DNA of 64,000 bases from Blastocladiella emersonii ATCC 22665 (Eukaryota; Fungi; Blastocladiomycota): positions 1,984,001-2,048,000 of the forward strand of contig JANHCV010000003.1 in assembly GCA_025594325.1 (NCBI GenBank), written 5' to 3'. Shown here piece after piece: positions 11,250 through 16,169 of this stretch. Both the position numbers and the translations under genes were made by a program. The notes under the pieces were generated by a model. That model was not told the DNA's origin. It worked only from the letters and a program-made list of their open reading frames with translations, and made no database searches. Positions within the stretch are counted from its first letter, which is position 1. Each line of letters opens with the position of its first letter.

Positions 11250-12719
11250 CTAGACCGAGTTGCGCTTAGCGGGGGCGGGACGCGGGGCGTCCTCGGGCTT
11301 GGGCGCGATAGCAATGTCGCGCTCCGTGGCCGCCGCGGCCGGCGCAGGAGCAACCTCGGTGGCCGTGGCCTGGCCCGCCTCGGCGCTCTCCGCCGCCTCG
11401 GCCTCGGCCTCCTTCTCCTTCTTGCGCTTGTCGTGGCGGATCGCCCACGCGATGAGCGAGAGGCACAGCGAGACGCAGAGGATCACGATCCGGACCGTGG
11501 TGCGGTCCATGCCCGAGGACGTCGACGTCGAGACGGGGACGTTGATGCGCGGGACCGTCGGGATTCCGCCGCCGACGCCCGACTCAGTGCTGTTCGTCGT
11601 GCCACGCGTGGTGTTGGTCGTGAGCCCGTTCCACCCCTCGCCCGTGAGGATCGTGTCGGGCCAGACGCGCAGGGCCTTGCCGGAGCACGTCATGGAGCCC
11701 GAGCTGCAGATCCCGTACCGGCACTGCGCCGTGTTGGAGCACTTCTCGCCGGGCAGCTTGCCGGCGACAAACTTGCGGGTCTCCGGGTCGCACACCACGT
11801 GCGACACCATCCACTTGAGCGTGCCGTAGTCGCGCTCGACGTACGGCTTGTCGTTGCCGAGCGGCGACAGCGTGGTCGGGTTGCCGACGCCGAGCCCCGT
11901 GGCGGCGGACGACGAGCTGGTCGAGACCTTGGTCGCCACCTCGAAGAACGGCTGCCCCAGCACGCCGACCGCCGCGCTCGCGCTCAACATGCCCGGCGGC
12001 CGCGAGAACAGGTACATGGACTCCTTGGCGGCCTTGGGGAACCCGGCGCCGTCGTACGTGCTCGGGTCGCACGGCGTCCCGATCGGCGGCGTCGCCACGC
12101 ACACGCCGAGCTCGAGCCGCGGCATGACCGTTGGCACGTCGTTCGTCCCGACGGTTCCGACCGTCGCGGGCGTCACGAGCGGCATCCCCGGGCGCACGTC
12201 GCGCTCGTTCGGGACGGGCAGGCCGCGCAGGGCGATATGGTCGCGGAACTGGCGCAAGAAGTCGGTCGAGTACGTCTCCTCGGGGATCCCCGGCAGGTAC
12301 ACGCCGGCGTCGACGAGCGCGCGCGAGGCGAGCGGCAGGCACAGGGTGCCGGCGACGGCGGCCCACGCGTTGGCGCACTTGGCCTGCGCGCACATCTCGG
12401 TGGTCACGGCGTTCTCGGTGGTCGGCTCGGCCGCCGCGGACGGACACGACTCGCGCACGCACTGGTTGAGGCGCTCGCGCGCGCCGACGCTCGGCGCGCG
12501 GCACCCACGCGCGTTGCTGCCGGACCCGTCGGCGAGCGAGCCGTCCGCGTTCAGGTACGCCGAGCACAGCGACGTGATGAAGTTGCCCGCGGGGACTGGG
12601 AACAGCTCGGGCGCCGGCTCGCCGGCCGTCTTCTCCTTGTTGAGCCGGAACAGCGGGACCGGGACCACGGGCCGCGAGGCGCTGCTGCTGCTGCTGCCGG
12701 TGTTGCTGCTGCTGCTCAT
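11250..12719 (-). CDS. Cys-rich (Dickkopf-N-like) single-pass membrane protein
   Basis: Many Cys, including LPGEKCSNTAQCRYGICSSGSMTC; Ser/Thr/Gly linker; TM segment VRIVILCVSLCLSLIAWAI followed by a basic stop-transfer. No clear signal peptide. Confidence 0.6.
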   Translation of the reverse strand: MSSSSNTGSSSSSASRPVVPVPLFRLNKEKTAGEPAPELFPVPAGNFITSLCSAYLNADGSLADGSGSNARGCRAPSVGARERLNQCVRESCPSAAAEPTTENAVTTEMCAQAKCANAWAAVAGTLCLPLASRALVDAGVYLPGIPEETYSTDFLRQFRDHIALRGLPVPNERDVRPGMPLVTPATVGTVGTNDVPTVMPRLELGVCVATPPIGTPCDPSTYDGAGFPKAAKESMYLFSRPPGMLSASAAVGVLGQPFFEVATKVSTSSSSAATGLGVGNPTTLSPLGNDKPYVERDYGTLKWMVSHVVCDPETRKFVAGKLPGEKCSNTAQCRYGICSSGSMTCSGKALRVWPDTILTGEGWNGLTTNTTRGTTNSTESGVGGGIPTVPRINVPVSTSTSSGMDRTTVRIVILCVSLCLSLIAWAIRHDKRKKEKEAEAEAAESAEAGQATATEVAPAPAAAATERDIAIAPKPEDAPRPAPAKRNSV

Positions 12720-13094
12720 CTTGGTCTTGATCGTCTAATGGTATCTCTATGGTGATCCGGGCGAGAGCGCGGCGCCGGCCGGCGGTTTTTGAAGTACACG
12801 GACAACAATCCCCCGGATCCAGGTGCCCAGAGTCACGTCGGGCCACGTCATTCGGGCGGGGGCGCCGCCCTGTGGCAGGCCGCGGGCGCACTCGTGGGCA
12901 GGCACACTGGATCGGACTTGGCGTTTCATCGTGTTTCAGAGTTTGTCCGCGCCATCATCAAAGTGTATCGGTCGGTCACGCGAGACGTGTCCGTGATGGG
13001 AACACTGATCTCGAGTCGAGATTCTCGACGCGCGGCGCCACGATTCAGCCCAGGCACACGCAAACGGTGAATTAATAGTCTCAATCCCAGCGCG

Positions 13095-16000
13095 TCATGA
13101 GGTCGATCCCGTCGACGACGTCCCCAGCAGCTCGTGAGGCGGCGCAACCGCGGTGCTCAGCACCATGTCGCCGCCGCCCGCGGCCGTCATGCGCCGGTTG
13201 AAGTTGAAGCTGAGCCGGCCCTCGCGCGAGGTGCGGCTCGAGTTGGACTTGATCCCGACGGCGCTCGACCCGGACGCGGCGCTGCCGACCGCGTCGACGG
13301 AGCTGCGCTCGGACCGGCCGAACGTCGACTCGAGGTCCGCGACCCAGTCGTCGGCCTCCTGCGGCGACTTGGTCTGCACCAGGTAGCTCGTGCCCGCGAG
13401 GCGCAGCATGAAGCAGCCCGCGGGGATGTCGTCCGAGAAGGTCGACGGGTCGATGCGCGCGGCCGAGATGCGCCGCGTGTGTAGCTCGCCGGACGCGTCC
13501 TACACGATGCATTTGTCAGTTGCTGGATCGCCGCCGCATGAGTACGAGCGAGTGTGCCTTCTCGGTCGGGTACGTGATCTGCAGCGAGAACACGGGCTCA
13601 TGGAGCAGCGCGATATTGATCTCGCGCCACCGCCGCGCGAGCCCGCCCATCTGCTTCATGGCGAAGTGCGCGCCGAGCCGGACCACGACCTTGCCGACGT
13701 AAAACTTCTTGGTCTCGAACAAATTCCCGCTTCCGCCGACGAGCTTGGCCGCGTCCTCGAACATCTTGGTGACGCTGCCGGGCTCCTGCTCGCCGATATT
13801 CGACTGCGCGCCGGCGTTCGTCTGGAAGAACGACTTGGCGCCGCCGCCGCCCGCACCACCGCCACCACCGCCCGACCCGCCGCCGTGCATCGACCCGGGC
13901 GCCGACCCTGCGGAAACGGCCGAGGCGCGGATCCGGACAAGCGCCTCGTAGACGGGGCGGCCAACGAGGACGAGGAGCACCGAGACGGTCGCGAACAGGA
14001 TCCCGACGGCGCGCACGATGAGCGTGACGCGGAGGTCGACGGCGGAGAGCAGGGACACGGGGACGACCACGGCGCACGCGCCCGCCATGCAGTACGCGGC
14101 GACCGCGATGAGTTTGGATTCGTTGTAGGTCGTCGCGACGCGCCGCACCTTGTACGCGAGCCAGCACGTCGCGAGGACCATGCCCGCGTGGTACAGAGCG
14201 AGGATCACGGTCGCGGCCGTGGCGCCGGGGCCCGTGGACGTCGAGCCGCACACGTTGCCGAACGTGTCGATGGACAGGTTCACGCGCTCAGCGCGCGGGC
14301 CCGTCGTCACGTCCCAGATGATGAGCAGGACCAGGTCGATGGCGGTCATGGTCACGACGGACAGGAGGAGTTTGCTGTTGCGGATCGACATGGAGATCAT
14401 CGACTTGTTGCCTAGCCCACGATCGCCGGTTAGCCGTGCCAGCTGCACGAAGAGAGCCCGCGGAGCGTACCGAAGAGGAGGTAAATCCGCGCCGTCTTAG
14501 CGATGATCGACGACAGCGCGATACATGTGCCGAGGGCGAGGAGGTAGATGTGGGCCTCGCATACGCTGGTCGAGATGGGCAGGACCTCGGTGAACACGGA
14601 GCACGTCACGAGCGCGGCGCCGATCGAGATGAGCGTCAGGAACGGCGGCGACGCCGACTTGATGGCAATGTGGCCGCCGAAGCGCGTCACGAGGCCCGCG
14701 AGTGCGCCGGCCACGGCGAGCACGATCGCGCACAGCACCGCGATGACGATGCCGATCGGGTGGCCGAGGTCGACCTGATTGATAAGCTTGACTGGGAGGT
14801 GTGCGAGCGGTTAGTGCGTGTGCGAGGTGAGTGAAAACGCGGGAGAACGTACTGTAACCCGGCGGCGGCGACGGGATCCACGACCCCCACAGCATCTCGT
14901 TGTCCTTGATCCACTGGCACGCGACCTCGGGGACCGTGACGCCGGGCGTCGACGACGCGTTGAGGAGGTTGTTGACGTCGAGGTCGCGGAAGTAGATGGT
15001 CTTGAGGTAGATGCCGACCGACGGGTTGGTGCGCGACAGCGACGAGGACGCGATCTTGATGAGCTGGTCCGAGTCCCAGTCACACGTCAGCGAGCTGCCG
15101 TTCGTGCCGACCTTGGGCAGATCGAACGTGTCGAAGCATGTGGACGTGTACTCGGGCAGGTGCACCATGGCGAGCTCGGCCGAAGCGGGCAGGACCTCGG
15201 GCCGCCAGTAGTACAGCAGGCACGCCGTGTTGCCCTGGGCCGCGCACGCGAACGCCTTGGGCACGAGCTGGTCGCCGAGGTATACGATGACGAGCTTGAG
15301 GTTCATGGTGATAATCCGCTGCTCGTTGAGGCCCTCCGAGTAGCCCGGGTCGACGTGCTATTTGATGCAGAGTCAGTAAGTCGCCTGAGCTGTCGTAGAG
15401 CAGCGATCGTACCCAGAACTCCTTGCACGTCGAGAACAGCTCGCCCTGGCACTGTGGCGGGACGAACATGCCGTTGCGGCAGTACGGGTACAGGGCCTGG
15501 TCGCACAGCCACGTTCCGTCGGCGTTCTTAGCCGTCGGCGTGGTCCCCGCGGGCGGCAGCAGCGCGAGCACCTCGGGCCGCGTGAACGACTTCCACGAGT
15601 CGAAGATGAGGTCGGGGAACCGCTCCGTGACCTTGCGGTTGATGAACCACGCGATACGGCCGGCGTACCCGACCATACCGAGGTCCTCGACCGTGCCCTT
15701 GTTCACGACAAAGTTCTGGTGCTCGGCGAGCGAGAACTTGGTCCAGATCTCGACGTTGGCGCGGTTCTTGCTCGCGCCCGCGCGAGGGTACGACCCGCGC
15801 GAGCCCGGGTGCTCGTACAGCACCGTGCTGACGCCCATCACGTCCTTGAGCAGCGTCGCCGCGACGTACGTCGTGAGGTTGGCGCTACAGGGCTCGGTGC
15901 CGTGAGCCAGGCGAAACGGCAGGTCCCGGAGGGCTTGCGTACCTAGCCCACGCGCCGTACTCGAACTCGACATCGTGCAACCGGCTGACGAAGACCTTGC

Positions 16001-16169
16001 CCGGGTCGGCGGCAGCCTGCGCGAGCGGCTCGGTCCAGCCGTACTTGTCGGTCCGTGCCCGTGTCAGGCACGACGGCAGGGTGCGGACGAGCTGGGCGTC
16101 GGCCGCCGGGGCCGAAGCGATCAGGGCCAGCCAGGCGGCCGCGAGGAGCACGCCTAATTGTAGATGCAT
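13095..16169 (-). CDS. Class C (7tm_3, GABA-B-like) GPCR with an N-terminal glycine-betaine/ProX(OpuAC)-type binding domain and a C-terminal PH-like domain
   Basis: Exons 16169-15943, 15884-15413, 15357-14853, 14791-14471, 14411-13558 (or 13546), 13499-13095. Signal peptide; WASANLTTYVA; seven hydrophobic helices with SPPFL, AKTARI and YNESKLI; PH-like end CFMLRLAGTSYLVQTKSPQEADDWVADL. Confidence 0.85.

Follow-up and report, generated by a model that had tools for sequence, protein, structure and literature searches.

A Blastocladiella emersonii class C receptor with a ProX/OpuAC-type ectodomain and a predicted PH-fold tail

The usual picture of a class C receptor is that of a Venus flytrap joined to a seven-helix domain. 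Here we describe a receptor gene of a different make-up in a 64,000-nucleotide stretch of the genome of the fungus Blastocladiella emersonii ATCC 22665 (contig JANHCV010000003.1; hereafter the window, to which all coordinates refer). The gene occupies 13095..16169 on the minus strand; it is intact and conserved, and its product has three domains. These are a secreted, disulfide-rich ectodomain that models as the type II two-lobed fold of the ProX/OpuAC family of bacterial binding proteins, a class C seven-helix transmembrane (7TM) domain, and a cytosolic tail that structure prediction and profile searches identify as a PH-fold domain. OpuAC heads on 7tm_3 domains are already catalogued in Allomyces; for the tail we found no earlier description. 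We favour the reading, at a probability of about 0.7, that this protein is a receptor with a betaine/choline-type ProX head, a GABA-B2-like 7TM domain and a PH tail, and that it signals through a G protein.

Results

We assembled the coding region from six minus-strand exons (16169-15943, 15884-15413, 15357-14853, 14791-14471, 14411-13546 and 13499-13095), which splice in frame into an open frame of 2796 nt that ends at a TGA stop codon (13095-13097) and translates into 931 amino acids. The five introns measure 58, 55, 61, 59 and 46 nt, and all are of the GT..AG type with GTAC donors; an in-frame TGA lies within intron 5 at 13516-13518. An initial annotation of this DNA had proposed six exons joining a signal peptide, an ectodomain, a 7TM domain and a tail, and had placed a TGA at that position of the last intron. 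The spliced frame agrees with it on both counts, and the motifs that it quoted are all present: WASANLTTYVA..LLKDVMG, NVEIW, GMVGYAGRIAWF and ACQWIKDNEMLWGSW in the ectodomain, SPPFL, AKTARI and YNESKLI in the 7TM domain, and RRWREINIAL...CFMLRLAGTSYLVQTKSPQEADDWVADL in the tail. When exon 5 was used as the query of an exhaustive HMMER search, it found at 100% identity the public B. emersonii protein H9P43_003522 (P0001), a 'hypothetical protein' that equals our splice model over residues 1-909. Residues 1-26 (MHLQLGVLLAAAWLALIASAPAADAQ; 16092..16169, minus strand) were called a signal peptide by eye from the sequence rather than with a predictor, and hydrophobic N termini are also present in the full-length homologues.

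All five intron positions have counterparts in the gene models of the paralogue P0152 or the Catenaria homologue P0153, both of which are predictions and not transcripts. Four introns match exactly in alignment column and phase (introns 1-3 in P0152 and introns 3-4 in P0153), and intron 5 falls at most two alignment columns from a phase-0 intron of P0152, within a gapped loop. Three sequencing runs that contained the locus sequence proved to be genomic DNA of the source sample; their reads are continuous through the introns and confirm the DNA sequence, not the splicing. Joints found in these genomic runs were ruled out as splice junctions, their sides being 20-21 nt long and set in low-complexity sequence.

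The ectodomain (residues 27-402; 14790..16091, minus strand, with introns 1-3) matched the OpuAC family of Pfam (PF04069) marginally on the spliced protein, at 25.1 bits against a cut-off of 21.2. Single exons scored 11.6 and 13.3 bits, weak but colinear, and homologues reached up to 44 bits. A profile built from 13 family ectodomains and compared with the sequences of the Protein Data Bank (PDB) matched DmpX (7yle, E = 1.2e-15) and TmoX (4xz6, 2.7e-11), followed by OpuAC and ChoX. AlphaFold2 (AF2) produced a model of the domain with a mean predicted local distance difference test score (pLDDT) of 85 and a predicted template modelling score (pTM) of 0.77. The 50 best Foldseek matches of this model in the PDB are all ProX/OpuAC-family binders of trimethylamine N-oxide (TMAO), dimethylsulfoniopropionate (DMSP), betaine, choline, carnitine or ergothioneine; TmoX (E = 2.8e-17, TM 0.81) and DmpX (E = 6e-17) are the best of them. 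A type I flytrap was considered and ruled out, as neither an ANF nor a LIVBP match occurs among these 50 folds, and Pfam found no ANF_receptor domain in the receptor protein; such a head is typical of animal class C receptors and is not required by 7tm_3. Pfam, profile, predicted structure and fold comparison thus bear out the type II ProX/OpuAC ectodomain, as opposed to a type I flytrap, of the initial annotation. The domain also carries a eukaryote-specific Cys-rich insert at about residues 195-232, and its ten conserved cysteines and three N-glycosylation sequons fit an extracellular location. A profile search for stand-alone relatives of the ectodomain gave one 258-residue protein only, so that the nearest bacterial lineage is not nameable from sequence.

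In its binding step the ectodomain would resemble the ProX/OpuAC family. The pocket in which DmpX holds DMSP is formed by W35, T64, W84, E113, W152, A153, Y200 and W202 (PMC10030565). In the HMM alignment W74, W123, Y282 and W284 of the receptor fall on W35, W84, Y200 and W202, and W233 is the putative counterpart of W152 by its spacing, once the Cys-rich insert is allowed for. The predicted aromatic cage spans 15205..15950 on the minus strand (W74, 15948-15950; W123, 15743-15745; W233, 15413-15415; Y282, 15211-15213; W284, 15205-15207). Two tryptophans of OpuAC, which we take to be Trp178 and Trp225, share columns with W74 and W123 in the alignment with 2b4l. Full-length members of the family keep the cage residues, the four tryptophans included, and the ten cysteines; the exceptions are two divergent paralogues, P0004 (H9P43_003500) and P0013 (H9P43_004764), where positions 282 and 284 are changed from Y and W to H and T and to Q and Y, respectively; these two may have a changed ligand or may have lost binding. 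Because the Trp cage is conserved, a ligand of the betaine/choline type is supported. Delivery of substrate to an ABC importer is a different matter: the domain shares one reading frame with the 7TM domain and is not a transporter subunit. We note that P0004 is encoded on the same 2.64-Mb contig as the window, that its 7TM motifs deviate and that its N terminus is truncated in the public model.

A short proline-rich linker joins the head to the 7TM domain and, as in GABA-B, there is no NCD3G cysteine-rich domain. The 7TM domain (residues 409-658; 13963..14771, minus strand, with intron 4) matched Pfam 7tm_3 (PF00003) with 125.9 bits against a cut-off of 33.5, over profile positions 2-248 of 251. 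Its closest solved relative is GABA-B2 (E = 1.3e-13), in which AKTWRV aligns with AKTARI and NDSKYI with NESKLI. These matches uphold the class C assignment first made from SPPFL, AKTARI and YNESKLI. Among 14 family members C479, K500 and C563 do not vary, and E606 is replaced in a single member (D in P0009). By their established roles, these residues are the cysteine pair that links TM3 to the second extracellular loop (C479/C563), the TM3 lysine (KT.R) and the TM6 glutamate (NE.K).

A Gly/Ser-rich, low-complexity cytosolic linker (residues 666-748; 13693..13941, minus strand), the length and composition of which vary across the family, leads to the PH-fold domain (residues 749-862; 13305..13692, minus strand, split by intron 5 at 13500-13545). 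Pfam PH (PF00169) scored 18.5 bits, under its cut-off of 25.1, yet aligned over positions 11-102 of 105; relatives scored 13.7-23.8 bits. A profile of 26 tail sequences matched 97 PDB sequences at E values up to 10, and the best 60 of these 97 are all PH domains, including those of PLEKHA (1v5p, 2.9e-8), ORP11 (1.3e-7), DAPP1 (1.5e-6), GRK3 (9e-4) and GRK2 (0.014). The AF2 model of the tail (pLDDT 85.3, pTM 0.77) is a seven-strand beta sandwich capped by a long C-terminal helix (model residues 109-135). Its top Foldseek matches have the PH fold and nearly all are annotated as PH domains, at probability 1.0 and TM scores by target of 0.55-0.68. W770 and W849, the latter the tryptophan of the C-terminal helix, are invariant in the family. 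Predicted fold, fold comparison and family profile agree in identifying the tail as a PH-fold domain, which is what the initial annotation had called it. Searches of the ESM Atlas with the tail, or with the 7TM domain and tail together, yielded clusters of generic PH or 7tm_3 type that fell short of the reliability score, and none with both domains.

In PH domains of the DAPP1 type, an arginine in strand beta2 is the key contact to 3-phosphoinositides. When the tail is aligned with DAPP1, the lysine of LTK corresponds to K761, and the beta2 arginine of WKTR is replaced by I773 (V, I, H, A, F or C in relatives). The basic K...(K/R)-x-R phosphoinositide motif of beta1-beta2, which marks a lipid-binding subset of PH domains and not the PH fold, is accordingly incomplete, with the beta1 lysine kept and the beta2 arginine absent. 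Because a hydrophobic column replaces this arginine in the whole family, classic phosphoinositide binding by the tail appears unlikely. Canonical binding of phosphatidylinositol 3,4,5-trisphosphate or phosphatidylinositol 3,4-bisphosphate (PIP3 or PI(3,4)P2) was rejected on the absence of the signature arginine, and the initial proposal that the receptor couples directly to phosphoinositides through its PH domain goes too far.

The OpuAC-7tm_3-PH architecture recurs in at least six B. emersonii paralogues (H9P43_003522, 003500, 006426, 001971, 004764 and 005106) and is also present in B. britannica, three Allomyces species and Catenaria. Homology extends over the full length, with E values of 1.6e-198 for an A. 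arbusculus protein, 7.7e-174 for a Catenaria protein and 4.8e-97 for AMAG_19447 (P0156). In a tree of 7TM domains the OpuAC receptors form one blastoclad clade (SH-aLRT 99). Allomyces arbusculus carries three OpuAC+7tm_3 genes in tandem on the same strand of contig JADHYV010000098.1 (41270-47306), a sign that receptors of this type were duplicated locally in Allomyces. An environmental protein of about 1080 residues among the metagenome proteins of the Joint Genome Institute (JGI), P0110/P0159, combines an OpuAC-like head that has three of the cage tryptophans with a 7tm_3 domain; it has no PH tail and other cysteines, and it sits on a long branch apart from the blastoclad clade.

The PH tail reaches further than the OpuAC head within these fungi. 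Our tail HMM matched 36 of about 160 class C representatives, among them receptors headed by ANF_receptor, SBP_bac_1 and EGF/NCD3G domains. All of the named sources are Blastocladiomycota (including Sorochytrium and Paraphysoderma) or spizellomycete chytrids (Powellomyces, Thoreauomyces, Spizellomyces, Fimicolochytrium and Gaertneriomyces). By these profile matches the PH tail is a lineage-wide feature of zoosporic fungi and not special to H9P43_003522. How often it arose cannot be read from the 7TM tree, in which the backbone is unresolved and the starred branches force at least three changes; a single origin is neither shown nor excluded. Among the cluster representatives of AlphaFold DB, PH tails appear on other fungal 'family 3' GPCR models, and OpuAC-like heads on many eukaryotic class C-like proteins. 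On this distribution the chimera that the initial annotation described is no unique invention, with the tail also on receptors of the Venus flytrap type and OpuAC-like heads on many eukaryotic class C-like proteins. Judged from these predicted models, the OpuAC-like binding fold seems to have been reused on several kinds of eukaryotic receptor. The OpuAC-like heads in AlphaFold DB also match the automatically named GABA-B receptor subunits K1PT05, A0A2B4RYI8 and A0A164NKV5, the guanylate-cyclase-domain protein A0A6A5C9I8 and the protein-kinase-domain protein A0A7M7KHN9. Outside the named fungal GPCR set, C-terminal residues 551-682 of the uncharacterised 822-residue protein A0A0D2X5P6 match the PH-tail model; should it prove to have a 7TM domain, receptors with PH tails may also occur outside zoosporic fungi.

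OpuAC (PF04069) heads were reported by Krishnan et al. in 2012 on six Glutamate-family receptors of Allomyces macrogynus (AMAG_01750, 04252, 14324, 14326, 15836 and 17562; PMC3251606), and de Mendoza et al. described the 7tm_3+OpuAC configuration in 2014 as conserved in distant lineages (PMC3971589). Both reports cover the N-terminal domains only and give no ligand, structure or function. A PH or other C-terminal domain is mentioned neither in them nor in a 2025 census of fungal GPCRs (PMC12842992), and we found no description of a PH tail on class C GPCRs in the full-text literature searched, which leaves most subscription journals outside its coverage. What had initially been put forward as an undescribed system is therefore a catalogued one in its OpuAC head and 7tm_3 domain, and the claim stands for the PH tail.

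Our model and the public one part at the 3' end of the gene. H9P43_003522 is annotated with 1403 residues; it leaves the receptor frame at 13163 through a 429-nt intron (12735..13163, minus strand, donor GTGCTG), skips the receptor's own stop codon and joins the next open reading frame. That frame (11250..12719, minus strand, from the list of open reading frames) encodes 489 residues from its own ATG and is Ser/Thr-rich, with one C-terminal hydrophobic helix. It matched no Pfam family significantly, its sole match being sub-threshold and at chance level, and a homologue search gave none; without homologues for it, homology cannot decide the gene boundary. Taken at face value, the public model would place behind the PH domain the 429-nt intron and then 494 more residues, which include an additional membrane helix at the C terminus. 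It is encoded by the public annotation P0001, the GT donor and AG acceptor both exist, and the downstream frame has neither a signal peptide of its own nor homologues as a separate protein. We nevertheless give this model little credence. The intron is 7-9 times as long as the other five and its donor differs from theirs; these five span 46-61 nt, and two homologous genes have introns of 59-88 nt. Each of the 13 aligned homologues stops no more than some 30 to 110 residues past the PH helix, and the receptor frame meets a stop 22 codons beyond the proposed donor, after which GC content falls as in a 3' untranslated region. The genome paper gives a funannotate annotation and does not mention RNA sequencing (RNA-seq) (PMC9730499), so the model was apparently built without RNA data. 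On these grounds the 1403-residue protein is probably an annotation error that fuses the receptor with a separate downstream gene, and the 429-nt intron a probable artefact.

Discussion

On the reading that we favour, a betaine/choline-type receptor that signals through a G protein, the ectodomain would capture a small solute of the quaternary-ammonium or tertiary-sulfonium kind, such as glycine betaine, choline, carnitine, TMAO or DMSP, which four tryptophans would cage between the lobes. The closing of the lobes would be relayed to the 7TM domain, probably inside a dimer like those that other class C receptors form, and the 7TM domain would then activate a heterotrimeric G protein. Beyond the flexible Gly-rich linker, the PH domain would more likely dock a protein partner, or else loosely tether the tail at the membrane.

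Several points weigh against this reading. Ligand class, G-protein coupling, dimerisation and the partner of the PH domain are predictions; any methylated compound with a positive charge might serve as ligand, and an osmolyte role is not required. The placement of W233 as the fourth cage residue draws on spacing and not on a residue-level structural alignment. By Pfam the OpuAC match is barely above threshold and the PH match under it, and of the five models that AF2 gave for the ectodomain, three were of low quality (pLDDT 47-56). The TM7 motif is R-P, where animal class C receptors have P-K-x-Y. Splicing and expression are argued from conservation and predicted gene models, because the sequence-bearing runs that we found are genomic DNA.

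The closest alternative keeps the ProX fold and departs from the favoured reading in ligand and physiology alone. It holds that the ligand is not a compatible solute but choline, an acetylcholine-like ester, ergothioneine, or a polyamine-like or methylated amino-acid cue, sensed for zoospore chemotaxis or encystment and not for osmosensing. Members of the fold family bind choline, carnitine, ergothioneine, TMAO and DMSP, and the paralogues vary at the cage, with Y, H, Q or G at position 282 and W, Y or T at position 284, a variation that suggests diversified specificities. Class C receptors are also enriched in zoospore-forming fungi (PMC12842992). We met no point that speaks against this alternative, and we regard it as a serious, if somewhat doubtful, possibility. 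A receptor without G-protein signalling, in which the 7TM domain is a membrane anchor and the PH domain the output that recruits a partner directly, is improbable in our estimate. The PH tail has been retained beside the 7TM domain across two fungal phyla, TM7 departs from P-K-x-Y, and there is precedent in class C-like proteins such as GPR158/179, some of which do not signal classically. Against these stand the TM3 lysine, the TM6 glutamate and the cysteines between TM3 and the second extracellular loop, which are kept in nearly all members, and the closest solved relative, GABA-B2, which is the G-protein-coupling subunit of GABA-B. That the gene is an unexpressed or decaying copy is hardly credible: with at least six paralogues redundancy is possible, but the 2796-nt frame is intact, all splice sites are canonical, and the family-invariant residues, cage tryptophans and cysteines are all kept.

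A bolder proposal goes beyond the favoured reading of a ProX-headed, G-protein-coupled receptor. Zoosporic fungi may have a so far undescribed design in which a PH docking module is built into the class C GPCRs themselves, for G-beta-gamma or for a non-canonical lipid or protein partner, so that receptor and first effector are one polypeptide; in blastoclads the betaine/choline-type head would serve chemosensing of onium compounds by zoospores. The PH domain of GRK2 binds G-beta-gamma in trans. We put this design forward tentatively and consider it rather unlikely as a whole.

If the predictions hold, a class C membrane module pairs here with a different and well-understood bacterial binding fold, and the class of ligand can be guessed from the Trp cage. 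This makes the protein a tractable orphan receptor, with a short list of candidate ligands and an ectodomain of confident fold. PH tails in dozens of class C receptors from two phyla of flagellated fungi offer a handle on chemosensory wiring, and a receptor with a built-in adaptor may serve biosensor design. In addition, the public annotation of B. emersonii probably contains a gene-fusion error at this locus.

Comparison with known systems

The ectodomain has its nearest structural relatives in TmoX (4xz6, TMAO) and DmpX (7yle, DMSP), then in OpuAC, ChoX, ProX, OpuBC and EgtU. Common to all are the two-lobed fold (TM 0.77-0.81), the order of domains and the aligned Trp cage. The bacterial proteins serve ABC importers as soluble or lipid-anchored partners, whereas the receptor ectodomain is fused in frame to a 7TM domain. 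Its Cys-rich insert and its predicted five disulfides set it further apart from them, and the sequences are only about 15% identical. For the membrane domain the closest solved relative is GABA-B2, which shares the AKT.R and N(D/E)SK motifs and the direct join between ectodomain and 7TM domain. The head of GABA-B is a type I Venus flytrap (ANF_receptor) and its tail a coiled coil; in their place the B. emersonii receptor has a ProX/OpuAC domain of type II and a PH-fold tail.

Among whole receptors, the OpuAC+7tm_3 proteins of A. macrogynus have the same head and membrane architecture and come from the same phylum, and the homologue AMAG_19447 has the same tail. The ANF_receptor+7tm_3+PH receptors of Blastocladiomycota and Spizellomycetales (for example P0012, P0016, P0058, P0070, P0128 and P0150) carry a homologous tail at a similar distance after TM7, but they have a type I flytrap as head and occupy a separate part of the 7TM tree, the deep branching of which is unresolved. 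The tail itself has the fold and the C-terminal helix tryptophan in common with the PH domains of DAPP1, TAPP and ORP11 type (profile E values of 3e-8 to 1e-6 for TAPP, ORP11 and DAPP1) and with those of GRK2/3. In DAPP1 the beta2 arginine contacts the phosphoinositide, whereas the receptor tail is hydrophobic at the same column. The GRK2 PH domain belongs to a soluble kinase that is recruited to receptors; the PH domain of the B. emersonii protein is part of the receptor chain.

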